A stretch of DNA of 64,000 bases from Schizochytrium sp. TIO01 (GCA_004764695.1 SMSO01000032.1:5240483-5304482), one strand, 5' to 3'. Counted from the stretch's first letter, positions 7,750 to 29,328 are shown. A program made the numbers and translations. Notes: generated from the sequence alone by a model not told the origin.

Positions 7750-8883
7750 ATGGCGCTTGGCGTAGGATATCTTTTGGCCCTGCTGACGGTGCTTGGTGCC
7801 GCTGGCTTGGCAATTCTGGGGAATGAAATGTACTACAACCCGGATGCTGGCAAGGTGCCCACTGAAATGTGGGCCCTGCAGAGCTCTGAAGCCGGCAAGA
7901 TTAGCCTTGACCGTGTCCCGGTGCCCAAGCCTGGCAAGGGTGAGATCCTTGTCAAGGTCCACTACTCCCCGGTGAACCCGAGTGACATCTACAACGCTAT
8001 GGGCACTTCGGACTACGCTCCTAGCCGAGGCCAGTTCCCGCATTTGAACGGCCTTGAGGGCAGTGGTGTAGTTGTTGCCTCTGGCGGTGGTCCTCTCGGC
8101 TACATTTACTCCAAGCTTCAGCTTCGTGTGGCTGCTGTTTCGAACAACCTCAATGGGCAGTTCTGGTCTGAATACGCTGTGACCACCCCTGCATACGCTC
8201 TTCCTCTTCCTGGTGAGGTGGATTTGAAGCAAGGTGCATCCACCTTTGTGAACCCGCTCACTGTCCTGGGTATGCTTGAAATTGCCAACGAGGGTGGGCA
8301 CAAGGGTCTACTTCATACAGCGGCCAGTTCCTCGCTTGGTCTCCAGCTTCTTCGTGCTGCTCCGCGCTATGGTACGACTATTCTTTGTGTGGTCCGTGGC
8401 GAGAAAAATGTCAAGGCGCTGAAGGAGGTTGGTCATCCCGATGATCTCATCATTCGCTCTGACGTCGACACCTTTGAGGATGATCTTAAAAAGGCCATCG
8501 CAAAGTACGAGGTCACGCTTGCTTTTGATGCTATTGGAGGCTCCTTTAGCCGCAAGATTTACGACCTGATGCCTTCAAAGAGTATTGTTTACCAGTACGG
8601 AAAGCTTTCTGGTGAGAAATTGGACGCTGAGTTCATTGAATCCAAGAAGAACGATAAGGACAAGCCATTCAGCTTCTGGCTCGTTGGGCCTTGGATTATG
8701 GAGGGCGGTGGTTTCCGCATGGCTAAGATTGCCTTTAATTTGTACCGTATGCTTCCTAACGAGCTTGCCACCACCTTTGATCGTGAGCTCAAGATGAGTG
8801 ATGAGAATATCATTGATATCCTTTACAAGTATGCTGAGCACCAAAAGGGAGGAAAGATGGTAATCAACACCATTATGGACTAG
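7750..8883 (+). CDS. Zinc-free MDR / enoyl-reductase-like oxidoreductase with N-terminal signal anchor; paralog B
   Basis: YSPVNPSD, GLEGSGVVV, FVNPLTVLGM, LHTAASSSLG, AFDAIGG. Colinear with paralog A. caagATGG start and hydrophobic GYLLALLTVLGAAGLAIL. Confidence 0.92.
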   Translation: MALGVGYLLALLTVLGAAGLAILGNEMYYNPDAGKVPTEMWALQSSEAGKISLDRVPVPKPGKGEILVKVHYSPVNPSDIYNAMGTSDYAPSRGQFPHLNGLEGSGVVVASGGGPLGYIYSKLQLRVAAVSNNLNGQFWSEYAVTTPAYALPLPGEVDLKQGASTFVNPLTVLGMLEIANEGGHKGLLHTAASSSLGLQLLRAAPRYGTTILCVVRGEKNVKALKEVGHPDDLIIRSDVDTFEDDLKKAIAKYEVTLAFDAIGGSFSRKIYDLMPSKSIVYQYGKLSGEKLDAEFIESKKNDKDKPFSFWLVGPWIMEGGGFRMAKIAFNLYRMLPNELATTFDRELKMSDENIIDILYKYAEHQKGGKMVINTIMD

Positions 8884-10698: not shown

Positions 10699-11910
10699 TT
10701 AGAGGGCTCCGAGAACCTTGGCAATGAGTGCCATGCGCACGTACATACCGTTCTCCATCTGGCGAAAGTAAGCAGCGCTGGGGTAAGAGTCAACATCCTC
10801 TGCGATTTCTCCAACTCTGGGCAATGGGTGCATGATGGTGCAGGTGTTCTTGGCGCCCTGGAGAGACGCATGGTTGACAATAAAAGATCCCTGGACCTTC
10901 TCGTACTCCTCAATCGAGTCAAAGCGCTCCTTCTGGACACGAGTTACATAGAGAACGTCTGTTTCAGCAATAACCTCAGCAAGATCGGTGTACTCGTTCT
11001 GTGAAATCACAACTCCCAGCGAGGATACCATTTCCTTGACCTTCTCAGGCATCTTGAGGCCAGGCGGTGTCACATAGTTAAGCTTGACGTTGTACATAGC
11101 CAAGAGCATAGCGAGAGAGTGTGTGGTGCGTCCGTACTTAAGGTCTCCGAGCATGGTGATAGTGAGGCCCTCAACAGCTCCGCCCTGCTCGCGCATGATA
11201 GTGTACAGGTCGAGGAGCGCCTGTGTCGGGTGTTCTCCGGCGCCATCTCCAGCGTTGAGCAGGGGTTTGCGCATGTAGGAGCTGACATCCTGAACGCTTC
11301 CCTTCTCAGGGTGGCGAAGAACAAGGATATCAGAGTAGCACTCGATGCAGCGCATGGTGTCCTGGAGGGTCTCACCCTTCTTGATGGAGGAGTTCTCGCT
11401 AACGTTGATGTAGGTGCCACCAAGTCTGAGCATGGCAGTAGCGAAGGAGCAGTTTGTGCGAGTGCTAGGCTCGTAAAACACAAGGCCAAGAACCTTGTGC
11501 TTGCAGCAGTCGAGCACGCTCATGTCAGCGCCCTCGTCTCCGTTGACGGCGGCCTTGCACTTGTCGGCTGCCACGAAGAGCTCATTGATACCCTCCTTGG
11601 TAAAGTCGTGCACAGACAGCACGTGATGTCCCTTCCACGTCATGATGTCTCCAAGGTCGATTGAGCTCACCGAAGACCCCCTTCGCCTTTTCCCGCTCTT
11701 GCTCTGGAGGTTCAAGTTACTCTTTTGGATACGATTGCCGTCCTCTGCTACGGACAGCCTTCGTTTTCTCGAGTGGCTCTCCTCAGCCGCTGCTGCAACT
11801 GCTGTGGCTACCGAGGCGTCGCTTTCGCTGTAAATTCGAGCTGCGGTCGCGCGAGGAGGCAGGCTCTCTGAGTCCTGCACCTCGGCGCCGCTCCAGTCCT
11901 CCGTGCCTAT
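10699..11910 (-). CDS. pyrB: Stand-alone aspartate carbamoyltransferase; catalytic part from ATG 11643 (314 aa), with an open 89-codon N-terminal extension back to ATA 11910
   Basis: FYEPSTRT carbamoyl-phosphate loop, KGETLQDT, VLRHP, NAGDGAGEHPTQALLD, GDLKYGRT, YVTRVQKER, MHPLPR, YFRQMENGMYVRMAL. The true start is uncertain (see findings). Confidence 0.93.
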   Translation of the reverse strand: MGTEDWSGAEVQDSESLPPRATAARIYSESDASVATAVAAAAEESHSRKRRLSVAEDGNRIQKSNLNLQSKSGKRRRGSSVSSIDLGDIMTWKGHHVLSVHDFTKEGINELFVAADKCKAAVNGDEGADMSVLDCCKHKVLGLVFYEPSTRTNCSFATAMLRLGGTYINVSENSSIKKGETLQDTMRCIECYSDILVLRHPEKGSVQDVSSYMRKPLLNAGDGAGEHPTQALLDLYTIMREQGGAVEGLTITMLGDLKYGRTTHSLAMLLAMYNVKLNYVTPPGLKMPEKVKEMVSSLGVVISQNEYTDLAEVIAETDVLYVTRVQKERFDSIEEYEKVQGSFIVNHASLQGAKNTCTIMHPLPRVGEIAEDVDSYPSAAYFRQMENGMYVRMALIAKVLGAL

Positions 11911-12555
11911 GTTGCTTTTGAAAAGTCGCTAATGAGGTCTGCTGCTCTTTCGGCAGCGACCTCACAGCGAACGATGACCTCCTCCTCTTCTCCTTCTTCC
12001 TGTCCTCTCTTTCCTTCTCTCTCTATCCTATTACACTAAGCAGTAGTTAGATAGCTAGATAGCTAAATAGAGAGCACCTAATATATATATATATTCACGA
12101 ACTAAGTATCTCTTTCTTTTCAAAAGAAAGAAATACCACTACGCCCGGACTAGGAGGTGTTACTGACCCCCTTATAACTGGTTGATTAAAAGTTGCTCGG
12201 TAGCGGGTCCTAGGAAGTCGATAGCAGCTCACTCACTTATAGAGAAAAGCACAGAACAATGCACGAGGATTCTTTGCTTTTCTTTGCTTTTCTTTGCCTT
12301 TCTTTCTTTCTTTCTTTCTTCCTTTTCTTTAATGCTTACTCGCTCGCTAGCAGCCGCCTATCTGTTGAGGTAGGGTGGGCTAGCAGAGGAGGAGAAAGAA
12401 AGAGAAAGAGAAAGAGAAAGGACCTGAAATGGACAGCACGCAGCAGAGGTCCCTCGAGGTTTGACGAGATGAGTGGAATGAACAGCAGGAACTCAGTGAT
12501 CTAGAAAATAGGTAACAAATGAATGCCCCTGCTGCTGCCCAAGCTGCTGAAGTGG

Positions 12556-12645
12556 CTTGAATCGACCTGTCTCGACCCAACTCGACTCGACTCGACTCGA
12601 CCCGGCTTGGCTTGGCGTGGCTCGAGTCAGCTCAGCTCAGCTCGA
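12556..12645 (+). repeat. Degenerate in-phase pentamer array (mostly CYYRR: CTCGA/CTTGG/CTCAG), 18 units
   Basis: cttga atcga cctgt ctcga cccaa (ctcga)x4 cccgg cttgg cttgg cgtgg ctcga gtcag ctcag ctcag ctcga. Confidence 0.75.
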
Positions 12646-15600
12646 TCTCGACTATGGATGGCTGAGGTATGCGAGGATATCCTAGGATAAGGTGAACAGG
12701 TCTTAGAGCTTGACTTGAGAGACTCAGCTAGCGAGAGTAAGAGAGAGGATGGGAGAATGGAGATTGAAGTCCAGACGTACGCCTGTGAGGACGAGGAAGA
12801 ACGACGAGTGGTAACAACAGCAGGAGTGCGACGCGGTTTCCTGCAATTAATTTAGATGCTTTCTCCGACTCCGTCTCCGTCCCTGTTTCCACTTTCTTCT
12901 TCTCCAGTGGTCCTGTCCTGTGACTACTTTGTTCACTTTTTCCCCCAATGCCTTCTTTCGAGGACAATTTCTTGCCGAATCTCCTCGCAAAGCGGGGGGT
13001 TTCAATGTTGAGATGCGTAGAGCTCAACTTGTTCCGCGTGGTCTGCGATCCTTCGAGAGGTCCAAATGTCCAAATGAGAAATGGGTAAACAGACTGAAAA
13101 CCTGGAAACCTGAGGCGATAATGGGACAGAACTTCACGAGAATTCTCAAAATGAACCCAAAAGTGAGTTACCGAGTGCACGCAGGCCTCGCGAATGCCGA
13201 GAATACGCTGTTAAGTTGGAAAACGGGACTTTGTGTGGCAGAATTGTGATTCTTTTTCTTCTGATAGTCAAGTGTTTCTTCGGTATATAAACAGTAATCT
13301 GGATAGAATTTCACTTGAAACCAGTCCGTGCTCACTGATCGCTGATCTCCTCTTAGGGATTCACTGCAAGAGGCTATGCCAATACTGAGCTCCAATCGTC
13401 TTGAAAAAGACCAATCAGGAAGATGAGGGTGACCACAAGCACAGTTGAAAGGTCCCGAGTTTGAGTTGCAATTTGGACTACTAACTGAAGAAAATGTGGC
13501 CAAATATGAAAAAAAAAAACTCGCTTTGCCTGATGTTAGAGGATCTCCGAAAGATTGCTTTACTTTTGCCTCGATTTTTGGACGGCCCGAAGCAGTGATA
13601 TGAAGATTCTCAGCGGAAATAAGAAAAGACGGAGTGCTCTTGTTTAAAATAAGAGTACCGCTCTGTACCTCAGCAACGTATCCCCAAAATCAGTATCCAC
13701 CAAGACAAAGACTAAGCTGGCCTTTTATTAAAAATGCCCCAGAGGCGTTCACTTTTATTAAGGTTTTAGTGGCGTTGGATGATCTTTTCTTGTTTTAGCT
13801 TCTCACACAGAAGATCATAAAACACGTAAGGTCGATTTGTAAAAAATGGCTTTGAATATTTTGTTTCGAAAAAGAGAATTTGAAACAATTTTCTGGATCA
13901 ACACTGTGCAAGGGTCCCTGTACTTCTTTTGAGGACTTCGGGAATCTTTTATTTTCGATGTCTCAGGAGCGAAAAAGATCTGTGTAACACTGGGCACGAA
14001 CTTGCATAGACAAGCTCAGCTTTTGCGGCTTGGCGAGAAACCCAAAGCACCACGCCCTGTAGGTCGCAGCGCCCCCTTCGAAACGCAGCGCAGGCTCAAT
14101 ACCACAAGGCTCGAGAGCGGTCTATACACAGCACCACTTGCCTGGGTCCGTCAAACAAACTTGAATGAAGAACTTTGAAATCTGCCAGACGTAGCTCAAG
14201 AAGCGTAAGCTAGAGCAGACCAACGAACAGGATGCCTTCAAAACAGTAGGCGTGGGCCAAGAGCTTGCCTTACTCGAGGTTCCTCTAGGTCGTCCCTGTC
14301 AACAACACCAGTCTAGTACACCAGCGCAAAGTCCCGCGATGGCAGCGTCGCTGTTTGCCTCTTTCCACGGTTTGGGTTTTGCTTTTCTTTGTACATTTGC
14401 TTTCTAAGACAAAGAGAAAGAAATGTAAAGAGAAACACTTTGTCTGCCTTTTTCTTATCTTTTAATTTAAAAATAAAGAAAAGAAATAACAAAGTGTTAT
14501 TTTCTGTTGTCTGATGCTTTACTTTGAGATGATGATTTTTTGAAAAGAAAAAACTCTTTAAATAATTCTTTGATGAAAGAAACTAGCAAAATCAGATATG
14601 CGGAAACACATACGATTGTTGCTGATAAACTGATATATATACATCACAATAATTAAATAATAGCGTTTAAAGTAAAACCTCACGAAGGCGCACGACCTTA
14701 CCATCATCTGTATAGTTTCTACCTTTCGGGATCAGTAAATAGTAATCTAATATTTACCATTCGATTTTCTCTCCGAGTGTGCAAGACCAAAGTGAGCTAA
14801 TTGTTTCCAAACCATTACCAACAAGGCTGGTCTCTCTTGGGGAACGAACACCATTACCTTCTAGGCTTCGCAAGCAAGAACGTTTCAAGCGACACAACTC
14901 TTATATTGAAACATGAACTATTCTAAATATTGTGCCTGCAAATAGCTTTTTGGTACGCTCTTCCAATCAATCTGAGCTATTTATGACATCCTGCGAAGTC
15001 TGAAGATGACTAAAGGTAAAAATCCGACGTTTTACTGAGAACAATGCAAACTAGAAAGAAGCAAACCTTTGTTGGACTATAGTTGGCTCGCTATGCGAAG
15101 TAAGACAAGAACTTTCATAATTAAGTTGTGCCAGATATCGTGTCATGATAAAAATAAAAATATATTATGCTAGCATCAACTACATGTCAAATCAAAACTT
15201 CAGTAGGGAGCTAGATCACAAGAACTTGTTTTATGCTAAGCCATCACTACATCACCAACTCGAATGAATCTGCGTCTTTATAGGATAATTTAGCACAGTT
15301 TTGCTACAAAATACATTCGCAACCTGTTTCCAGTAGAAACTCAGTGGTGGTGCCAAAACGACTGGTTTGTCATGAAGAAGCTGAATTATATCATATTTAT
15401 GCTTACTTCATTATACTGAGTCGGAGGGAACTATGCTGAAAGACTTTAGAAATTTGTGTCTACGCTATGGTGGGATGTCATGTTTCAAATGTCTTGAAAG
15501 TTGGCGTTTTTTATTCTACAGAGTTTCGGTAATAGTGTGTTCGAGTCTTTTGCGAACAATTTTTAAATGTTTCTTGTAGTGTAATTTCAGTATAGAGATT

Positions 15601-18600
15601 GAAAACACAGAAGAGCGTCAAGGAGAACACTGATGTATGTTATAACTTCAAGCAAACCATGTGGTCATATATTCGTAACGTAAACCAAGTTTAGTCAGCT
15701 GGACTTTTTTTAGAGTTATCTCACGAAGTAAAGTCGCATGAGTCATGACAAGAGTCCTGCGAGAACATTCTTGTACTTCCTTTGCTCACATCACTCCATG
15801 AACGCACAGTCGAGGCACATTTGTTTTTGGTAAAGCTCGAACACTCAGAATCCCTCTTTCTTCGTTTAAACATATCATTTGGTGGCTTATTATTCGCGTT
15901 ATTTCAAGACCTTGTAGAAAAAGAAATTCGGTAAATCCGAACACAACATCAACGTTGTTAAAAATAAATTTTATTGGCATTTTGATGAGAGCCATTCATG
16001 TTTGTTATTTAAATACGGAACCGGTAGAGTTTTGCAGGATGATTTCGTTCGACCTTTTCATGAGTGCAGGCATACTTTAACTACTGATAGATTTTTTTAA
16101 GACTGGTAGCGATATGGGCATTGCGCTATGGAGACAATTTCAACTTGGCAAATGGATCGTAGTCCTAAATACAACATAGGGAGCGAACGATCAATCAAAT
16201 GCGCTGCATTAATTGACTTTTTGTTGATGGAGTATTTAATGCGTACTGAAAATATATCACTTATACTCATTTTCCCTCTTTAATTTTATTTTCTATAAAG
16301 TTCAAATATTTTATGAAGATATGCAGCCTGCATTTAAACCTCAACTTGAGAATTAGTCGATATTCACCCTATGATTTCATGCACATCGAAAAAGGAGCAT
16401 TTGTCGAAATAAGTAGAAGGTTTAACTATAGTATATATTATTTAAGTAAAAAATTATGATATATTTTAATTAAAGCAACTTTGACTTTTTTATAACTATC
16501 TTTTAAAGCTAAATAGAAGTAAGGGGGGAGACTAAATATTCCTGTTCAAGAATGAAACTTTGAGACATATGCATTTCACACAAACTTTTTTTTAAATTTA
16601 AACTTCTGAAACGTTGTTAATTTTTTTTTCTAAGCACCAAACACTAGACCGTGGCTAAGTAGGGCTACATGTGCAAATATACATAGGAATGAGAAGCTAG
16701 TAAAATCAAGAGGCTGTTCAAATAATTAGGGGTTGGGGTTATCAATTTTTATATTTGTTTTTATAGTGGTGCTTACATAATTTATGTAATAACTTCCAGG
16801 AAGTCATCAAGACTAGTCAAAACTTCCAGGTACTAGATTCGATGGGAACGCGACAGGAGATGTCACTCGTTTCCCGCTAATAGCAAAATGAATGTATCAA
16901 AAGGGGTTACTGTTACAATACTACGTGTATCAGTGAATCGTAGATCTGTGTTCTCCTTCCAAACAGCGTGCCAGGCTGCTAATACTTTAAGGTATAAATA
17001 TAGCAGTAGGCACAAAGTTACCCAATTAGATCGTAGTAATAACAAAAGAGTAAAGAAAAGAATTAAGAACTAAAAGTGACTCCATTTATTTCTAAAGATC
17101 AAATCCGAAAGAATAGAAGCTTTTAGGATAGCTCCGTGTTGACGAGAATGAAGGGTAATCGAACAAGGAATCGTCACTGACTATTTGAATTCAAGGAAAA
17201 TCGTGCGCGTCAACTACTCTGCAATGCTTTTTCACAATTTTGCAGCGGCTTCTTAATGAGGTCTCCATAAAACTTATGTACTTATTTATGATTCTAAGTA
17301 CGTTACAATCTCGAGTGCTGTTATTCTTGGAGTCCTTCGTTTGAATCAAGACCCGATCCAAGTGCAGAAACTTATTTGAATAGCATGGGACCAGCGACAG
17401 TCCCATTTTCGCTTGGAATGCTCGCCTCATTTCATACCTACGGCTTGGTGTCCACAAAATGATGCAATGTTTTAATCACCAGCTCAATATGATGTCACCC
17501 AGCATGGAGAAAAGATATATGCTTCCTCGACATAAATTAAACCTTGAAGTGTATTCATCAAAACATTCTCATCGATGGAGTGTTTGCCGAAAAAATACTC
17601 ATATTAAGAGATAATGGTTCGCCTTAATCGTTGGTAAGCTTTTGTGGATATAATTTAATTATAATAATAATAAAATAATAAATATACATATGATAAAAGC
17701 ATGCTATTTTAAAAGCTACTATCCAGAGATTATTTCACCTTCCACTTGACTAAAACTCTAAGGCCAAATCAAATCAGCGATTGAAAAATTGCGCAAAAAC
17801 GCTTACGAGGGTATAATATCTTCCTTTATATTAAAAATTGGTTTTTGATATATAGCAGAAATTAGGAATAACACATCTACTGACGTAGATTTAAAAAATC
17901 AAATTGAGTTAAAGCGTCACTAATCATGGAGCACAGTTAATTAATAAATTGAAGAAATTAAATCTATAGTAAGCGTTTTAAATCTATATTGTGATCCTAG
18001 CTAGCGTTAGTTGGCAATCTAAATGTAGAACGAGCAGATTGACTCTAAATTGCTCATATTTGAGTTATCTCAACAATTCACATGCCTGATAAATATCAAT
18101 GCATTCAGCCTTATCTTACCACAGAATATTCACAAGTTGGCAAACCAAATTCTGAAGCTGGCGTATGGGCTAAACACACCTCCACATAGTTTTCAGAAGT
18201 ATTAGCCAATGGAAACTACGATGGTATACAGATGAAAGAAATAATATGAACCTGAAAACAAAATAAGCAATGTCACTTTGCTTTGAGGGTACGCAAAACA
18301 TATTTTGGTACTGTTGCTTTTAAGATCTCTGCTATGTGTTTTTGGACACTGCTGGCTAGTCGTGAAAAGTAAAGCGTATGTTGATCAAATACTTTGCACA
18401 GCCAGCAGTATTACAATACTGACTTGTGAATGTGAATTGGTCATGATGTTTAGTTATTCTTGCGCCAGGTACCTATCTGCCGAAAAAGTTTTATCCCTTC
18501 GAGATATGTGACGAGTCCATGAGTGTTGCATGTGGTTAGTAGTATGGGACCTGCCATGTCTAAAAAGGAATATTTTAAGAGACAGGTAATCAATCACAGA

Positions 18601-21063
18601 AGAACGAGCTAGACTTCAAGAATTCTCGGATGTAACTTTCGAGATAAGAAAGTGTTCTTAACTGTTTTATTTTTATAACTAGTGTTTTTATTTGCTTTTT
18701 TTCTTATTGAATATTTTGGTGAGCTAAGTTGAGTGTCCACAGAGGCAAAAAATAACCCACTCCACTACGCAGTGCTGCATAACGCCAATCCTTTAGTTCC
18801 GAGCGCTCATACAATAGAGTGTGATAAATTATTGAGACAGTAGATTGTAGTAACAGGGAAAGAGAGTAAATCTCTAGCTTGAAAGTTGAGATCGTTTTAC
18901 GCCGCTTCTTCCTTCGCAAAAGGGTTTTTAAACTTTTAACATGGCAACAGGAATATACAGGGTTTGTAGTTTTTTTTACTTTTTATTTTTTTAAAAAAAT
19001 ATATATAGTTTATTTTTTAAAATCTAAAGAATACTTCTTTAAAATAAAATAAAAATAAATATAAATATAAATATAAAATAAATATAAATATTTATTAATT
19101 TATATATAAATTAAAATACAAGTAACAAGTTGGGAATCAAGTGGTGCTGGCGAAGTTTTTCAAAATAAAAACTCATAAATTATATATAGGTGAGATCGGA
19201 GCAGAATAAATATTCATAGAATGTAGTAGTTTAATAATGATAAGCAAAGCAAAAAAGCGGAAACTGGAAACTTGTTTATTTGGAAACACCGTGGCGTGAC
19301 TTGCGAGTATAACTATTGTTTTGGGCTTTGTGCAAAATCAACAACAACTAGGTGATGCAAACACGATGCTTCTTTCCTTTGTTTTGTAATTCCTTTCGAT
19401 AATACTCTGTAGAATGCAGAATTGTTCAAGCTTGAATTGTCCTTTGAGGACTTGTTTCCAAGCCAAAATTTGACGCAATTTGCTGCGAGTAAAAGACTAG
19501 AGTTTTCTGGCCCAGACCTAAGTAAAATCTTGACAATGTGGAAACCTGGACATAAAAACCAAGAGAGATATTGTAGCTACTCATGTCAATACCATGCCCT
19601 TACAGATCGACTGGCCTGCATCGTCTGACAAAAGTAAATCAGTCCGGATTGTTTTAACATTTGCTGATTGCAAATGCTGGCACAGTGATACTGTGCGCTT
19701 ACCTTCAAAGATAATAGTACTTATGTATTCTTTGTAACACTAAGTCAGTGGCAGCAACTTGCAGAATGATAACTTGAACATCTATGTTGTTTATTTTAGA
19801 AATGGGAGCCAATGCACTGCATGTAGAATTCTTATTTCTCGTGTATACATTTCGTCGAGAAAGTTAAACTTTAGCAGCCAGGGATCATCAATTTGAGAGC
19901 ATAGAGTGCCTCGCAAGCAAGCCATACGTTTTGCATGTACGCGAAGGGTTGTGATGACTTTATGGAAGATCAGCAACTCCAATAGATCTACCCTTATCTA
20001 TCTATCTATCTATCTCTAATAAAGATTGTTTCCAACCTAACTTGTCATTCTGAGTAACCAAAGTCACTTCAAGCACCCGAGGAATTAATTTTCTTTTTCT
20101 TTAGAAATCTTTCATACACATAACAATAAATATATTTTGTTCGTTATGCGTTATGGGATAGAATTTCTTAACGAGAGTTGTGTTTTCCTTCTAGGTTTCG
20201 GCAAATCGAGATCTCTATAGCCTGAGGTCTTGATGAACTTCTGTGTGACGTTTAAAAAAAAGTAACTAAAATAGTGAATGACACTAAGTGAGCAAAAGCC
20301 CAGTTTACAGGTGAACGTCTAAGCTAGGAGAGGTCTTCTGACAGCGGAGCGCCAATCAAACAAACAAGGTGAAAATTGAAACATGAGAATTATTGAACCT
20401 TCTCTTTTTCTTTTTCTTTTTTTAATAATTCGATATATATTTTACACATCGATATTTAAAATTTTAAGAATGGAATAAACATATTAAAATTGATCAGATT
20501 TGTGAATAGACTTACTACATCACTCGGTAAAATTTCTCTCGAATCGTGGAAGTATTCTATTCGTAAGTGTATTGTCAAGGGTGATTTTGTTTCCTAGGGT
20601 GAGTGTTTTATTTTAGTTTATGGTTCGCCGGGATCTTTTCCTCTCCGCCTAATCTTTGACCTCTCAAGGTATATATAAGCATTTCAAAATACACAAAGGT
20701 GTGAAAAATTTTCCACCTCATTTTCCCTCTCTTTTAATTAAAAATATATATATATATAGTTCTTTTAGATAATTATTTTTGTTTTATTTCTTATTTAAAA
20801 TGTTTCATTAGGTATCAAAGATTTACAACTCATTCCAACAGTTTTTCATCGGTGCAAATTCATTCTCCGAGGTTTTGTAGAATATTGCATAGCTATAAAT
20901 CTACTATTGGCTACATCTTAAAGGGAGCTTTCGCAACCTCATGCCATGCTTATATTCTAACTTCTGAAACACCTAGAGCTCAGGATGGGAGATGTAATTT
21001 ACAAAAGAACGCAGCTTCTTAGAGACGCGTGTTGAAACTATTCTGTAGTTCTTTTCTCGGAGT

Positions 21064-21520
21064 CTATATTGATAAGTTTTCAGGCTGCTTTTTAAACTCA
21101 AAGGAGGCTTGAAGATGACTGTAAGGCAATATTGTTCTGATATCAAATGAACTCGAGGCGCTGATACAGAACTTTCTGTAGGGGAAATTTAGCAATACGG
21201 TGCTTTTACAATTTAGAATAAACAAGCTAAGTATAACTCTGATTTCACTGTACTTTCCCACGGTAGGTATGCCCATCTCCGCAGGCGAAGATGGAAACAA
21301 TGAAACTGAAATAGCTCCCTACGATATAACATGCATGGTTGGACCTGTTACATCAACTTTCTCCTGTTCATCATGACCAAGTAGTACGTAAGCTCCTGGC
21401 GAGAATAGTTGTTCCAAGCTGACCTGAAGTATATACCCTGCACGATTCTTTAGCTCAGACAAGGGATAAGTCTCCGAAGGCACGCACGCACAAGCTTTTT
21501 GAGTCTGAATCGCCGCTTGC
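21064..21520 (-). pseudogene. Decayed coding fragment in the gene desert
   Basis: About 150 codons in one frame with a single internal TAG (PSETYPLSELKNRAGYILQVSLEQLF...MHVIS*GAISVSLFPSSPAEMG...) inside AT-rich DNA. No family assigned. Confidence 0.25.
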
Positions 21521-23832
21521 CCTCACATAGCACTTTCCAATTTAAGAGATACTATGTTCCTTTGCATCTTCTAAATGGAAGCCAAATAGTGTTGCTTCGT
21601 ATTCCCACTTTTCTATTTCTAAAAATTGTTTTCAAATGTAACAGTTTTTATGCTTATTTTGTTCTTCAAGTTCTGCTTCTTTTAATTAATATAAAATCAT
21701 TCTAGTTCGTATGATAGTAAGTACTACCTTAGAATATTGAATTCTTAAATTGCTCAATGCGTATTCGTCAAAATCTCAGAAGGGCGTCATAGGTAACGAA
21801 GAGCTTGCATGAATTGATAACGCGAAGACCTCTGACTCGATCAGGTAACAGAAAGAATGAATGACTCGTCAGCCACCTCAACTAGCATCCTGCTTTTGTT
21901 ATATTATAAAAGTGGAACACTAAAAAAGGAAGACGTTTGTCTGGGCCAGTTCACGTGTGATGCGGCTTTTCTTGATGCAAACATTGTTCAAGCAACGCAT
22001 AAGGACTTTGAAAGTTAGTCAAATAAGTAGCATGGACATGATTTGCAAAATTATGACGCAGTACAAATAAGCTTTCCATCGAGCCAGACCAGATATGGAT
22101 GACTGTTTTTACTGGATTTTACACCCAAGTCAAAGGATTAAAAGGAATAGCCTCTGATTAGTGAGACAAGATTTTTGGAGGCAATATGTCTTGTTTAAGC
22201 ACCACGAAGTGTGCGAAACAACAACATATATAGCTATATCAACAATTCATATTTTTAACTATTTAAAAAGCCGACAGAGCTTGTTGCTTCTTTGGCAGTT
22301 GTCTATCAGCACCCATCAAACTCAACAACATACATAAATAAGTTAAAATAGTGGTGGGTTGGGTCGGGTCTTGTCGACATCTGATCTAGGTTGCAGCTGC
22401 CTGCAAGCTAGTATTCGGGCATTTTCAATTCCAATCGGATTGCACAGAACTTGCGAAGCCTGGTTTGTAGGGTGGCTAAACTGGTTGTCCTCCGACTTCT
22501 GGTTGGCTTACTTCAAAGGCCTTCTGATTTGGTTTGCTATGTTATTTGCGTATAAATGCGGAGTTTGTTCTTTTCTGAGACCGCCGTGAACTACGGTGGT
22601 CAGCAGTTTACGCATCGAGACTCAGACAATTTTAAACCCAATTTAAAACAAACGTTGACGAAATAGCTGCTTCAAGAAGAATGTTGGGGCCCTCTTTGTT
22701 TGCTTGACTCAAAGAGTCTCTTAGAGATATACCCCTTACTTTTACATTTCATTATTTGCAAAATCCTAAAAGATTGAAACGTTTGTGCTTAAAAGGATTA
22801 ACACTGGATAACTTGAGCCTCAATAAGTTGTAGGCATCAACTTCTATATATCTATATATATGTATAAACAAGTGCTGCCTGCACCTGGAAATAACATACA
22901 GCGAGTATGGACAGAAAATTGGTGCCTAAATTTTATAAAATGAGGATTTTATTCAAACTTTCTCATTTTTTTAAACAGAATAATACCGGCGCTACGCTCG
23001 GACTGAGTAGAACAATCATAATCGTAAACGCGTTGAATCTTCTTAATTTAAATTGTAAGAGGATTTAACACATCTGTGAAGACATATTTGTCGCCCGTCT
23101 AGCTTTAGATCTACTGTATGAGAAGGGAATAGCGGGGTACTTCAATTCAGTTCTTGTTTGTAGTCTATTAATCAAAAAGAGAAGCGAAGAGAAAACCCTC
23201 ACTATACGTGTCTCTGATAGACTACTTTATTGATACATCACTCAAGAACCTCGTGCATCGACCTACAGGAACAGTAAAACTAGAAAGAGGACCAAGCTTC
23301 TTCTAATAGCATGAGCTATTAATGTTTCAAAATACATTTTCTGTCAAGGAGTAGCGCCCGTGATTTCTTAACTCTCATCGTACACAAGAAATCCTTACAC
23401 ACTCAAGGCATCTCATGCTTGAACAGAATAAAAACAGAAATAAGATTAAAGCATGCGTTGATGCATGAGGTGTTCTCGTTGCTTGTTATTTGAATTGGTT
23501 CTTGTAACATGTCTTGGAGTGGTGATGCTACAGCTGAAGTTATTATCAATAGCTTTCTGATTTGTGAGAGTCACCCCACTTGCGCTCAACTGTAAAAAAT
23601 CTGATTAGATTGTGGAAAGAGTGAATAGCGAGTAAAATGTATTTGCGTATGAACCACAAAGCCATTCATATTTGTGGAATAAAAATGAAAAGTCAATTAA
23701 ACATTTTTTGAGTGTTTCGGAGATAAGCGACGTATTATAACGTGTATTCATTTGCTTGAGCAGCTTTAGGCAGGATCAATATAAACTGAGCTCACAGTCG
23801 CGGCTATTCTAAAAATTTCCAGCAAATACCGA

Positions 23833-23916
23833 ATTCATTCATTCATTCATTCATTCATTCATTCATTCATTCATTCATTCATTCATTCATTCATTCATTC
23901 ATTCATTCATTCATTC
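23833..23916 (+). repeat. (ATTC)21 microsatellite
   Basis: Perfect tetranucleotide run. Confidence 0.97.
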
Positions 23917-25781
23917 CTGCATGATCTACCTATATCCAAAAATGAACAAATAAATAGCAACATAAACTTCGCGCCTACTAAATTTGAAATGCCAACTAGG
24001 GTTACTTATTAGCTTGTCGGTTGCTATCTAAGCCTTGGAGCTCTCGCTCCTTGTTTTGCTGGGTGTTATAAGTTTATCGTAATCAAACTTCTTTGACTAG
24101 TGTTATAGAGAGGCTCAAAAGAGTTGTCCCTGCTGAGCCTTTTCACTCGTCGCAGTTGTTAATAATTTTTCAGATCTCTCTTTCTCTTTCGTTGCTAATC
24201 ACAACAACAGGAAAAGTAGCATAGTATCGTCAAAAATTCTTGTCTTGATGTCGTTTATAAGTGTGTGGTCTTCATGAACTATTGTAAGGCTTATCCCTGT
24301 GCTACTATCCAGATGCTTCAGGTTTCAGATCTTCAGGTGTACTCGTTTGATAAATTGAAATATGTTTCAGAGTCGTCTACCATAATCAACAGAATTTCAC
24401 GCTTGCTGCTTTGGCACGCATCAAAAATTAAATACTGTCCAATTTCACGAAAATAGATCAAGCTTCACACCAAGTTCAATCTTTACAGCAGATAAACGGA
24501 GTCGTAATTCTCATAATAGTAGAATTGTTTACGAGAAATGACCTGTCCACACAAATGGTCTGTATTGTAACTAAACCAAACATGTACTGAAATTGTGCAT
24601 CTTGTTTTAGTGTGGTGCATATTGATCAAAAGTAGCGTTTCGGAAATCAATATTTTCCATACTTTGTGACAGTTACGTGCGTCAACAAATGCTTTCATGT
24701 TAGCATAGGTCTTCTAGCTTCACTGAAAAGGAACAACCTATACTCACCCAGCTTATCTCATAAGTTTGTACTCACCCTTCACTATGTGAGTGTTCAACTA
24801 TTTAATTACAACTATCTACAACACCATAGTTGCGAGTTTTGTAATTTGAAAACTGTTCTAGTTATGTTGGAGGTGAGGATTCAACCTGCACAATATATAT
24901 ATATAAATACATCATAAGCACATATCGTGACGTTCGTGATGCATTCAGAGTGTTGTCTGCATAATCCAAAACTTTGTTTGAGATTATTTAACAAGGGCCA
25001 AGCTGCGCACAAGCTGTCCCATGCCCTTCCCCTGTGCAGCTTTACAACAATCTATGTAGGTTGAACTACCATGATTATAGCACCTCTTCTAGGTTTTGTC
25101 TGAATTTAATTTGTCAACGACAAGTTCCAATGATGTTCTTCCTCGAGCCAAGTGTTGCATATTATCTGTCACACGTCTAGATCCGTTTAAGCCAAACTTT
25201 TCAAAATTCTTCGGTGATCACTTTTGTCAGTCACCAGATCAACATCGACTGAAGAATCTTTCACTCTTTCATGAATCAGGTACAATAGAGAAGGCCGTGC
25301 AACTGCGTCATGCTTACTTGGTCCATGTTTCATGGGTTCATTTGTTTAAAACCAAAACACTAACATTACATAGAGGCTCCAAGGTCTCTTTTTTCTGACT
25401 CGATCCTCTCATTCATTTCCGGGAGCGCGTTCCCACGTTCCCTTCGTTCCCGCATCATGTCCACGCGTCATCATAACGACCCATAAGAGAATGATGGAAG
25501 CAAGGTATACATTCTAGAAGAACCTCATCCCTTCTTCTTATAACATAATCACTGCAACACCTAAGTTACAGAAGCCCATTAGGTAAGGTATTCTTGGTAA
25601 TATATGACCGCGTGTATGTATCCGCACGACTCTGTTCTCGTGTGGTGAACAGTGCAGTACGCGTTGTCTTGTACCGGCAAGACACCGAAAACACCATTAA
25701 AAGAAGCAATTTAATCGAGTTAAAGTTTCCTACAAGACCGACGCTCGCAGAGAGCGTTGGAGAACGGCAAGAGAACGTTTG

Positions 25782-27770: not shown

Positions 27771-27901
27771 AATGAATGAATGAATGAGTGAATGAATAAA
27801 TGAATAAATGAATGAATGAATGAATGAATGAATGAATGAATGAATGAATGAATGAATGAATGAATGAATGAATGAATGACTTTGTAAATGAGTGAATGAA
27901 T
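27771..27901 (+). repeat. (GAAT)n microsatellite, partly degenerate
   Basis: Long GAAT run, perfect over about 27807-27879. It generates the spurious FIHS-repeat ORFs on the minus strand. Confidence 0.97.
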
Positions 27902-28068: not shown

Positions 28069-29328
28069 ATGTTCTTCGGCGGCGGCGGCTTCCCTGGCGG
28101 CGGCTTTCCCGGCGGTCCCGGAATGGGCGGCATGGGCGGCGGCGAGGTCGAGAACAGCGAGTACTACGAACTCCTTGGAGTAGAAAAGACCTCAGATGAC
28201 GGCACCATCCGCAAGGCGTACCGCAAGCTCGCCATGAAGCACCACCCCGACAAGGGCGGTGACGAGGCTACCTTTAAGCAGATCTCCGAGGCCTACGATG
28301 TCCTCTCCGACAAGGAGAAGCGTGAAACCTATGACCGCTACGGTAAGGAGGGTCTTGAGAACGGCGGCGGCGCTCGCAACGCTGACGACATCTTCTCCAT
28401 GTTCTTCGGCGGCGGCGGCGGTGGAAGGGCTCCCCGTGGACCCCAGAAGGGCGAGGACGTTGTATACCCGCTTAAGGTGACCCTCGAAAACCTCTGCCTC
28501 GGCAAGACCGTCAAGCTGGCCATCAACAGGCAGCGTGTCAAGTACCCGGAGGGCCTCGACGCTGAGTCAGCTGTGACTGAGTGTGGCACCTGTAATGGAC
28601 GTGGTGTGGTCTTGAAGACCGCCCAGATTGGACCGGGCATGATCCAGCGCATGCAAGTTCGCTGCTCGAGCTGTCAAGGTGCGGGTAAGAGCTACAAGAA
28701 GGGCGTCAAGGTTGTCAAGGAGAAGAAGATGCTCGAGGTGTACGTCGAGAAGGGTATGCGCCACAACCAGAAGATTGTCTTTAAGGGTGAGGCCGATGAG
28801 GCTCCCGGTCAGCTTCCCGGAGATGTCGTGTTTGTGATCGACCAGCAGGAACACGCTGTGTTCAGGCGCAAGGGTGCCGACCTGCTCATGGAGAAGCAGA
28901 TCTCCCTGCAGGAGGCTCTCTGCGGTCTCAAGTTCACCCAGGAGCATCCTGATGGTCGCACTCTGATTATCAAGACAGAGCCCGGTGAAATCATCAAGCC
29001 CGACATGATCAAGTCCATCGTGGACGGAGGTATGTCTGTGCACAAACGCCCATTCACCAAGGGCCGGCTCTTTGTTGTTTTCCGTGTTAACTTCCCGGAC
29101 TCGCTCAGCGCACCCCAGATCACCGCACTCAAGTCCGCTCTCCCTTCCTCCGGCAGCGAGAACGAGACCATGCCTGAAGGTGAGATGGTTGAGGAGGTCT
29201 CCATGATGACCGCCTCTGCTGATCAGATCGGACAGGTCTCTGCATCCGCCTCCCACGGCAACGCCTACGACTCCGAGGATGAGGACGATGGCCACGGTGG
29301 CCAGCGCGTGCAGTGCCAGCAGTCGTAA
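28069..29328 (+). CDS. DNAJA: Type I Hsp40/DnaJ (DNAJA/Ydj1-like), cytosolic, CaaX-prenylated
   Basis: J-domain with HPD (KHHPDKGGD), G/F region, two CxxCxGxG repeats, C-terminal substrate-binding domains and terminal CQQS. ATG at 28069 (caaagATG). Strongly biased codons. Confidence 0.95.

Follow-up and report, generated by a model that had tools for sequence, protein, structure and literature searches.

Control through nucleotide-responsive leaders is well known for pyrimidine biosynthesis, with E. coli pyrBI regulated by attenuation and yeast URA2 by start-site selection. Upstream stretches that are poor in AUG also occur in another setting: in green algae, polycistronic mRNAs translated by leaky scanning reportedly carry an AUG-poor upstream stretch that is itself a protein-coding ORF. 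Typical 5' leaders have medians of ~200 nt (185–220 nt in human, Drosophila, and Arabidopsis). In the model of Lynch, Scofield and Hong (2005), the risk that premature AUGs arise sets a limit to UTR length (as cited in 10.1101/2024.02.17.580833). In mammals, "ATG deserts" have been described as a statistical under-representation of ATG within ~1 kb of the start site and associated with promoters of the TATA-less or CpG-island kind, where initiation is dispersed over 50–100 nt (Lee et al, 2005, as summarized in PMC5580651 and PMC2672154). Long leaders are found in the apicomplexan Toxoplasma, where 5' UTRs have a median of 713–800 nt, and 90% carry upstream AUGs (uAUGs), which number five per transcript at the median and are only weakly selected against (PMC12338608).

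Here, we analyzed the region upstream of an aspartate carbamoyltransferase (ATCase) gene of the thraustochytrid protist Schizochytrium sp. TIO01 in a 64-kb window (64,000 nt, the whole stretch of DNA studied). The ATCase CDS occupies positions 10,699–11,643 on the minus strand as one exon with 314 codons and a stop, identified by homologue and Pfam matches (OTCace_N, E 3e-43; OTCace, E 1e-33). Its nearest homologue, the ATCase of Hondaea fermentalgiana, is 87% identical, likewise 314 aa long, and begins at the same Met. The start ATG (11,643–11,641, minus strand) has C at −4 and A at −3, in agreement with the consensus of 66 long ORFs from the same genome. No recognisable poly(A) signal was found that would fix the 3' end of the gene. 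An enoyl-reductase-like gene lies next to ATCase in convergent orientation (7,750–8,883).

On the plus strand near this start codon, CAT occurs at 11,583, 11,641, 13,816, 14,005, 14,394, and 14,609. As the CAT at 11,641 is followed by the next one only at 13,816, positions 11,644–13,815 (2,172 nt) contain no minus-strand ATG. The gap measures 2,175 nt; after it, the longest in the window are 633 nt (CAT) and 785 nt (ATG). This count agrees with the initial annotation, which had read the same void by eye and had described the opposite strand as rich in ATGs; we count 34 there over the interval. It had also noted that other genes on the minus strand soon meet an upstream ATG, and in this window they do so within 44–459 nt. 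Among the 64 trinucleotides counted on the minus strand of 11,644–13,815, ATG alone has a count of zero, the next lowest being 13. The window-wide ATG rate predicts ~35 occurrences in the interval, and a first-order Markov model built from the interval's own dinucleotides predicts 18, with a minimum of 6 in 2,000 simulations. In agreement with the initial annotation, base composition (GC 0.47) does not account for the void.

These numbers bear on whether the run has a non-selective cause, be it chance, composition, simple repeats, mutational bias, or an assembly artefact. Tandem or simple repeats do make up ~14% of the interval, and other A/T-rich trinucleotides also show kilobase-long gaps in the genome sample, which we assume to lie in GC-rich coding sequence. 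Such a cause is nevertheless very unlikely: in addition to the Markov simulations, the density of the reverse complement CAT is normal, the run stops exactly at the start codon, like other long runs, and the ATCase ORF with its upstream extension is present in independent assemblies. Apart from a 60-bp GAAAG repeat, the interval is single-copy in the 64-Mb genome.

The recurrence of such runs was assessed on both strands of a 264-kb sample of the genome, with frequency estimates based on 66 long ORFs. The sample contains nine ATG-free runs of at least 750 nt, all upstream of genes. Eight of them stop precisely where an ORF of 314–4,569 codons has its first ATG, and the ninth adjoins a 2,222-nt run, just upstream of it. 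All nine are strand-specific, with normal antisense ATG counts of 9–34. Runs that abut start codons in this way are what selection against upstream AUGs leaves behind in scanned leaders. Bona fide genes of unrelated function lie behind the long runs: Pfam domains are present in six of eight proteins scanned, and the runs precede, among others, an fn3 protein (2,222 nt), a BCAS3 homologue (1,561 nt), and an AP2-like gene (1,026 nt). Runs of ~1 kb or more are found at ~5 of the 66 genes, and runs of at least 1.5 kb at three. The ATG desert is thus a feature of a genome-wide minority class, comprising ~5–8% of genes at ~1 kb or more. Across all 66 ORFs, the upstream ATG-free distance has a median of 144 nt, compared with a median of 37 nt for random gaps, and at typical genes the depletion is limited to the first ~200 nt. 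The distal edges of the deserts are sharp, so that successive upstream ATG distances read, for example, 1561, 1573, 1601, and 1613 at one gene and 807, 825, 833, and 837 at another, a pattern more readily explained by a discrete boundary than by selection weakening with distance. In the two longest deserts, the distal part is graded, with 2–3 tolerated uATGs before the density returns to normal.

This distribution also speaks to the proposal of the initial annotation that the desert is a new, possibly nucleotide-sensing mode of control particular to ATCase. ATCase catalyzes the committed step of pyrimidine synthesis, nucleotides control it in other organisms, and its desert falls within the top ~3–5% of sampled genes. 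However, since unrelated genes of the same genome carry deserts of equal or greater length, the desert is not a pyrimidine-specific switch, and such runs turned out to be common enough genome-wide, including the one before the fn3 protein, to remove the claim of ATCase-specificity. The runs at the other pyrimidine-pathway genes checked are ordinary (UMPS, 336 nt; DHODH, 209 nt), as is that of the OTCase paralogue (83 nt). With respect to pyrBI and URA2, the likeness is confined to the enzyme, ATCase, and the position upstream of the CDS, whereas nothing resembling a leader peptide, terminator, or U-tract logic can be detected here. A leader peptide is impossible in the run because it contains no AUG, and searches of the leader revealed no attenuator, nucleotide-sensing element, or conserved ORF. 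An Rfam search of the leader gave no family or riboswitch match, returning just sub-threshold miRNA-like matches on a CT/GA inverted repeat, whose hairpin is not more stable than shuffled sequence (z −1.7). We therefore regard a pyrimidine-sensing leader as improbable, and the outcome for this narrower claim is negative. The other part of the proposal, an unspliced leader purged of AUGs, has gained support from the nine strand-specific runs. A metagenome scan of 80 ATCase loci found none with a desert (upstream gaps of at most 295 nt), the best of them being 62% identical and thus too distant to speak for close relatives.

An upstream region without ATG could also be coding in disguise, either as a non-AUG N-terminal extension of ATCase, as upstream ATCase exons, or as a gene on either strand that excludes ATG or CAT. 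The ATCase frame indeed remains open, without ATG, for 95 codons adjoining the start (11,644–11,928, minus strand), an extension that ranks among the four longest of the 66 ORFs and has a GC of 0.58, a weakly raised GC3, and a sub-threshold Pfam match to LAP1_N (E 0.016). It is missing from all eight orthologues aligned, which start at the same Met or 6–15 residues earlier, and the sole amino-acid differences among near-identical database copies (S6N and N49I) lie within it, the 314-aa enzyme having none. Judged from these comparisons, the extension is probably a non-coding leader. In the remainder of the upstream sequence, a Pfam scan of leader ORFs gave nothing significant, codon periodicity was not detected in 11,644–13,815, and the longest leader ORF (150 aa) had no homologue among 5.8 billion proteins. 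Moreover, coding sequence would not remove out-of-frame ATGs, and hidden coding of any of these kinds has only a slim chance of being correct. For the same lack of a Pfam match, periodicity, or homologue in the AUG-poor stretch, a polycistronic arrangement with a leaky-scanned upstream ORF was rejected. The ATCase leader resembles the green algal mRNAs in having a long AUG-poor upstream stretch, which lets ribosomes reach a downstream ORF, but differs from them in containing no coding ORF. Strand asymmetry of k-mers inside ATG deserts revealed no effects other than those that follow from the missing ATGs.

The depletion extends further than the initial annotation had given: the ATG-poor stretch that it described is real, but continues up to 14,608. 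Over 11,644–14,608 (2,965 nt), three ATGs are found on the ATCase strand compared with ~47 expected, and normal density returns from 14,609. The distal ATG-poor zone (13,816–14,608, minus strand) opens with the ATG at 13,816–13,818 and then contains two more in 790 nt, where ~13 are expected (Poisson P ~3e-4). Each of the three begins a short ORF on the minus strand: uORF1 (13,795–13,818; 7 codons), the first upstream of the ATG-free run, uORF2 (13,963–14,007; 14 codons), and uORF3 (14,313–14,396; 27 codons). All three uATGs have a pyrimidine at −3 (T, T, and C, respectively), in contrast to the favoured C(−4)A(−3) of the main ATG. Reinitiation through multiple uORFs, as in GCN4 or ATF4, was considered and rejected, because the last short uORF ends 2.15 kb before the main AUG and nothing inhibitory lies near the CDS. 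At 14,400–14,610 (minus strand), where ATG density normalises, GC falls sharply from ~0.47 to ~0.36; inside the zone it is 0.39–0.58, compared with 0.28–0.41 across the 10 kb beyond 14.5 kb. An A/T-rich, TATA-like tract is present at ~14,455–14,475. The sharp fall in GC at the end of the ATG-poor zone suggests a discrete start site ~2.8–2.9 kb upstream of the ATCase ATG, and we consider 14,400–14,610 the putative 5' edge of the transcription unit and a candidate start-site zone.

We favour, by a narrow balance of probability, the interpretation that the ATCase mRNA has a very long 5' leader, unspliced and non-coding, of which the stretch forms the body. This leader would start distally, be scanned, and belong to the genome-wide minority class. 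Transcripts would most likely begin at a discrete site near 14,400–14,600, and 40S subunits would pass, or reinitiate after, the three tiny uORFs of weak context in the first ~800 nt. Scanning would then cover 2,175 nt without an AUG up to the ATCase start in its good context. Ongoing purifying selection would remove each new ATG on the sense strand; by our estimate, 2.2 kb contain ~300 one-step ATG neighbours, such that ~1% divergence would suffice for a first ATG to arise in a neutral stretch. That the region is transcribed, where its transcripts start, and that the long form is a major mRNA are predictions drawn from the DNA sequence. Counting against a long leader, efficiently scanned leaders of 2–3 kb are unusual among eukaryotes.

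The features of the locus are in line with uAUG depletion under the scanning model, as the strand-specific lack of ATG ends at an authentic start in good context and the tolerated uATGs are distal, weak, and followed by very short ORFs. The difference is one of extent, with 2.2 kb absolutely free of ATG and ~3 kb nearly so. Leaders this long are expected hardly ever to persist under the neutral UTR model, implying that the start site is somehow held at its distal position. Mammalian ATG deserts share the upstream depletion of ATG, and there several start sites yield one protein, whereas the ATCase void is absolute, strand-specific, 2.2 kb long, sharp at its distal edge, and set in an AT-rich intergenic region of a protist. 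The depletion at ATCase is much stronger than in mammals, and the sharp distal edges of the deserts point to a discrete boundary. In Apicomplexa, near-kilobase leaders likewise occur in single-celled eukaryotes whose genes are otherwise compact, but Toxoplasma leaders mostly contain uAUGs, whereas those of the thraustochytrid would be fully purged, implying strict initiation at the first AUG. A literature search for leader lengths or uAUG content in thraustochytrids found no description.

It is quite possible, if somewhat short of probable, that the ~5% of genes concerned, which include metabolic and regulatory ones, form a discrete class with AUG-free leaders of 1 to >3.5 kb and focused distal starts. 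In this lineage, strictly linear scanning would then routinely extend over kilobases, some function, for example stage-specific control of translation or mRNA storage in zoospores, would preserve the long leaders, and ATCase would be one client among several. If the long leaders are real, the organism offers a natural test of the distance over which 43S complexes can scan and of why a start site is held kilobases away despite the mutational pressure expected under the neutral model. Strand-specific ATG-free runs provide a sequence-only guide to gene starts, to the initiator ATG, and probably to start sites in thraustochytrids. These organisms are used industrially for DHA, and their promoter and UTR parts are currently picked blind.

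The main alternative to a single long leader concerns the use of start sites. The principal ATCase mRNA may have a short leader, with the 2–3 kb upstream serving minor, dispersed, or stage-specific starts (for example, in zoospores as opposed to vegetative cells). In a very large effective population, rare long isoforms would also have to stay translatable, and ATGs would be purged accordingly, following the ATG-desert logic of Lee et al (2005). An ATG desert is an established concept for dispersed promoters, and the graded distal parts of the two longest deserts, with their tolerated uATGs, are compatible with it. On the other hand, most deserts stop abruptly and do not fade with distance, the short depletion at typical genes argues against pervasive upstream initiation as a general property, and the mammalian deserts are statistical and lie within ~1 kb of the start site, unlike an absolute 2-kb void. 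We consider conditional upstream starts a tentative, rather doubtful explanation.

Assembled contigs bear on both the long leader and the upstream starts. Near-identical ATCase ORFs with a leader of at least 237 nt are present on six JGI/IMG contigs of 4,324 nt and on a Logan contig of 4,333 nt. The predicted ATCase transcript, consisting of a ~2.9-kb leader, a 0.95-kb CDS, and a 0.45-kb 3' UTR, matches this length of ~4.3 kb. The contigs are ambiguous, as they could instead join ATCase to the convergent enoyl-reductase-like gene through unstranded merging, the two ORFs together spanning at least 4,131 nt; if they are such merges, their end at ~11.9–12.0 kb would mark a proximal start. Exact look-ups of leader and neighbour ORFs, intended to tell what these contigs span, returned no matches. 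A protein look-up also indicated a transcriptome of the MMETSP0958 series. The enoyl-reductase-like neighbour is itself found on a transcript contig of 4,992 nt, so the assembly that contains it evidently includes long or merged contigs.

The ATG void upstream of the ATCase gene is real and lies far beyond chance. On the + strand of the window, CAT, which reads as ATG on the ATCase strand, occurs at 11641 and next at 13816, so that the gene strand contains no ATG in any frame between 11644 and 13815. This 2,172-nt run corresponds to a gap of 2,175; the runner-up gaps in the 64-kb window measure 633 for CAT and 785 for ATG. Over the same interval, 34 ATGs are found on the + strand, and the strand-specific run that the initial annotation had read by eye is thus confirmed by direct count. 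All 63 trinucleotides other than ATG are present on the gene strand of the interval, the rarest of them 13 times. About 35 ATGs would be expected from the window-wide rate, and 18 under a first-order Markov model trained on the interval's own dinucleotides, which are themselves already ATG-depleted. The lowest count in 2,000 simulations under this model was 6, which makes a non-selective cause of the void very improbable. Simple repeats form about 14% of the interval, and its DNA is single-copy in the 64-Mb genome except for a 60-bp GAAAG repeat, which rules out a transposon or repeat. We estimate that roughly 300 triplets of the run could become ATG by a single mutation, so that a neutral stretch would acquire its first ATG at about 1% divergence; on this reckoning, the void must be under current or very recent selection.

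Out-of-frame ATGs are not purged by coding sequence, and ATGs are not purged from a constitutively removed intron; neither would account for the void. Hidden coding sequence is also hard to reconcile with the absence of any Pfam domain in the sizeable ORFs of either strand, the lack of codon-position GC periodicity, and a 150-aa ORF with no relative among 5.8 billion proteins, and we consider it highly unlikely. The stretch matches no Rfam family and contains no exceptional hairpin. At 12270-12420 (-), inside the leader, CT-rich and GA-rich tracts pair to form an imperfect inverted repeat some 120 nt long; it draws sub-threshold miRNA-like Rfam hits, and its folding energy (-53 kcal/mol) is no significant gain over that of shuffled sequence (z -1.7). 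To our knowledge, the only process that strips ATG from one strand and stops at the start codon is selection on an unspliced scanned leader. Judged from sequence, the interpretation of the stretch as a leader that is at least sometimes unspliced, scanned, and selected against uAUGs holds up well.

The standalone ATCase ORF (10699-11643, minus strand; Pfam OTCace_N and OTCace) has its nearest named relative in the Hondaea fermentalgiana enzyme (87% identity, 314 aa), which begins at the same Met. Seven more orthologues, stramenopile and related, start 6-15 residues earlier, as measured against a conserved Trp just after the start. This agreement identifies the ATG at 11643 as the true start, and the codon fits the genome's C(-4)A(-3) preference. 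An open in-frame extension of 95 codons, rich in S, A, R, and K, continues upstream (11644-11928, minus strand). It is missing from the aligned orthologues, and the two amino-acid differences among near-identical database copies both fall within it, while the 314-aa enzyme is invariant. Both observations speak against coding, and the extension appears to behave as non-coding leader.

The same signature is present at other genes of this genome. Our sample, 264 kb out of 64 Mb, comprised the window and a further 200 kb located elsewhere on its contig. For 66 ORFs of at least 200 codons, the nearest ATG upstream of the first one, in whichever frame, is a median of 144 nt away, versus 37 for all ATG-to-ATG gaps. 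The tail is heavy: five ORFs reach 956 nt or more, and three reach 1.5 kb or more (2,222, 2,175 for ATCase, and 1,561). ATG-free runs of 750 nt or more number nine on both strands of the 264 kb. Eight of them end precisely where an ORF of 314-4,569 codons has its first ATG, and the ninth (1,112 nt) lies directly upstream of the 2,222-nt run, with only two uATGs between; antisense ATG counts are normal in all nine (9-34). The proteins behind the long runs, which include an fn3-domain protein, a BCAS3 homologue, an AP2-like protein, a C2/EF-hand giant, a GT28 glycosyltransferase, and glutamate synthase, are real and mutually unrelated. In a control over all 64 trinucleotides, comparable gaps were found only for A/T-rich triplets (AAA, ATA, TAG), whose gaps we assume to sit inside long GC-rich coding regions. 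Since a metagene plot shows typical genes to be ATG-depleted in the first ~200 nt only, the kilobase runs form a distinct minority class. A second desert, which shares the ATCase architecture, lies on the + strand of piece L007 of the same contig (L007:571-4162; G000:C31:1040571-1044162), where 2,222 nt without ATG precede a 764-codon fn3-domain gene and a further 1.4 kb contain only two ATGs, giving an ATG-poor total of 3.6 kb before normal density resumes. On another piece, L012, the 1,561-nt run precedes a BCAS3-family gene (L012:8440-9997; G000:C31:1098440-1099997; + strand) and has a very sharp distal edge: the 121 nt beyond it contain five ATGs.

These findings bear on the proposed link to pyrimidine biosynthesis. 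The upstream runs of UMPS (336 nt), DHODH (209 nt), and the OTCase paralogue (83 nt) are short, and equal deserts precede unrelated genes; a pyrimidine-sensing leader is therefore most improbable, and the recurrence of such runs at unrelated genes of the sample, an outcome that the initial annotation had itself named as refuting, removes the claim specific to ATCase. The broader proposal of an at least conditionally unspliced leader purged of uAUGs survives as a general inference, as runs stop at start codons elsewhere too.

Upstream of ATCase, the ATG-free 2,175 nt are followed by about 800 nt with three ATGs (13818, 14007, and 14396), all with a pyrimidine at -3 and opening ORFs of 7, 14, and 27 codons. 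The gene strand thus holds only three ATGs over 2,965 nt (11644-14608), a longer ATG-poor zone than initially described. At 14609 the usual density abruptly sets in again, and the following 380 nt contain nine ATGs. GC drops from about 0.47 to about 0.36 near 14,500 and stays at 0.28-0.41 across the next 10 kb; the AT-rich region at 14600-25000 contains no ORF of 150 codons or more. Other deserts also end sharply, with successive upstream ATG distances of 1561, 1573, 1601, and 1613, or 807, 825, 833, and 837, a pattern more in keeping with a discrete distal boundary than with selection that weakens gradually upstream. We suggest that a focused start site near 14.4-14.6 kb would produce a leader of about 2.8-2.9 kb; ribosomes would skip its short distal uORFs or reinitiate after them. 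Such a discrete long leader is somewhat more probably than not a major mRNA form of ATCase. Alternative or dispersed upstream start sites could also yield an ATG-poor zone; the sharp edges favour a discrete boundary, and this explanation seems possible but less probable.

Transcript-length hints are compatible with the long leader but not decisive. The ATCase ORF with at least 237 nt of leader is found on six JGI/IMG contigs in the protein collection (longest 4,324 nt), and ORF and leader also on a Logan contig of 4,333 nt, the size expected for a 2.9-kb leader, 0.95-kb CDS, and ~0.45-kb 3' UTR. However, ATCase and the convergent enoyl-reductase/ADH-like gene (7750-8883, +) have a minimal joint span of 4,131 nt, and this neighbour is found on a 4,992-nt transcript contig, so the ~4.3-kb contigs may be unstranded two-gene merges. 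The MMETSP0958 transcriptome, presumably an Aurantiochytrium limacinum data set, contains an identical or near-identical counterpart of a neighbouring protein. In H. fermentalgiana, the 473,675-nt contig of the ATCase orthologue also carries three paralogues of the enoyl-reductase/ADH-like gene, a hint of conserved linkage; a 28.7-kb Logan contig carries the copy of this gene seen here together with a 49%-identical paralogue.

Avoidance of uAUGs, like the scanning model, is well established, and uAUG-purged leaders are a known kind; what would be new here is how long and how complete the voids are, and that they mark a class of genes in a protist. Mammalian dispersed promoters are known to have "ATG deserts" (Lee et al, 2005, as outlined in PMC5580651 and PMC2672154), which are a statistical depletion reaching no further than about 1 kb from the start site. 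Apicomplexan leaders approach a kilobase but are full of uAUGs, which in Toxoplasma occur on 90% of transcripts with a median of 5 (PMC12338608), in contrast to 2,172 nt without any ATG at ATCase. In the model of Lynch, Scofield and Hong (2005), as cited in 10.1101/2024.02.17.580833, UTR length is limited by the risk of premature AUGs; on this account, AUG-free leaders of 2-3 kb should not last unless a distal start site is held in place. The literature searched contained no paper on thraustochytrid leaders.

Elsewhere in the window, an (AATG)33 microsatellite at 27771-27901 (+) places 33 sense ATGs about 170-300 nt before a 419-codon ORF that starts at 28069 (+). Unless this gene has a leader that tolerates many uAUGs, its start site must fall in the ~170 nt next to the ORF. 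Another microsatellite, (ATTC)21, is located at 23833-23916.
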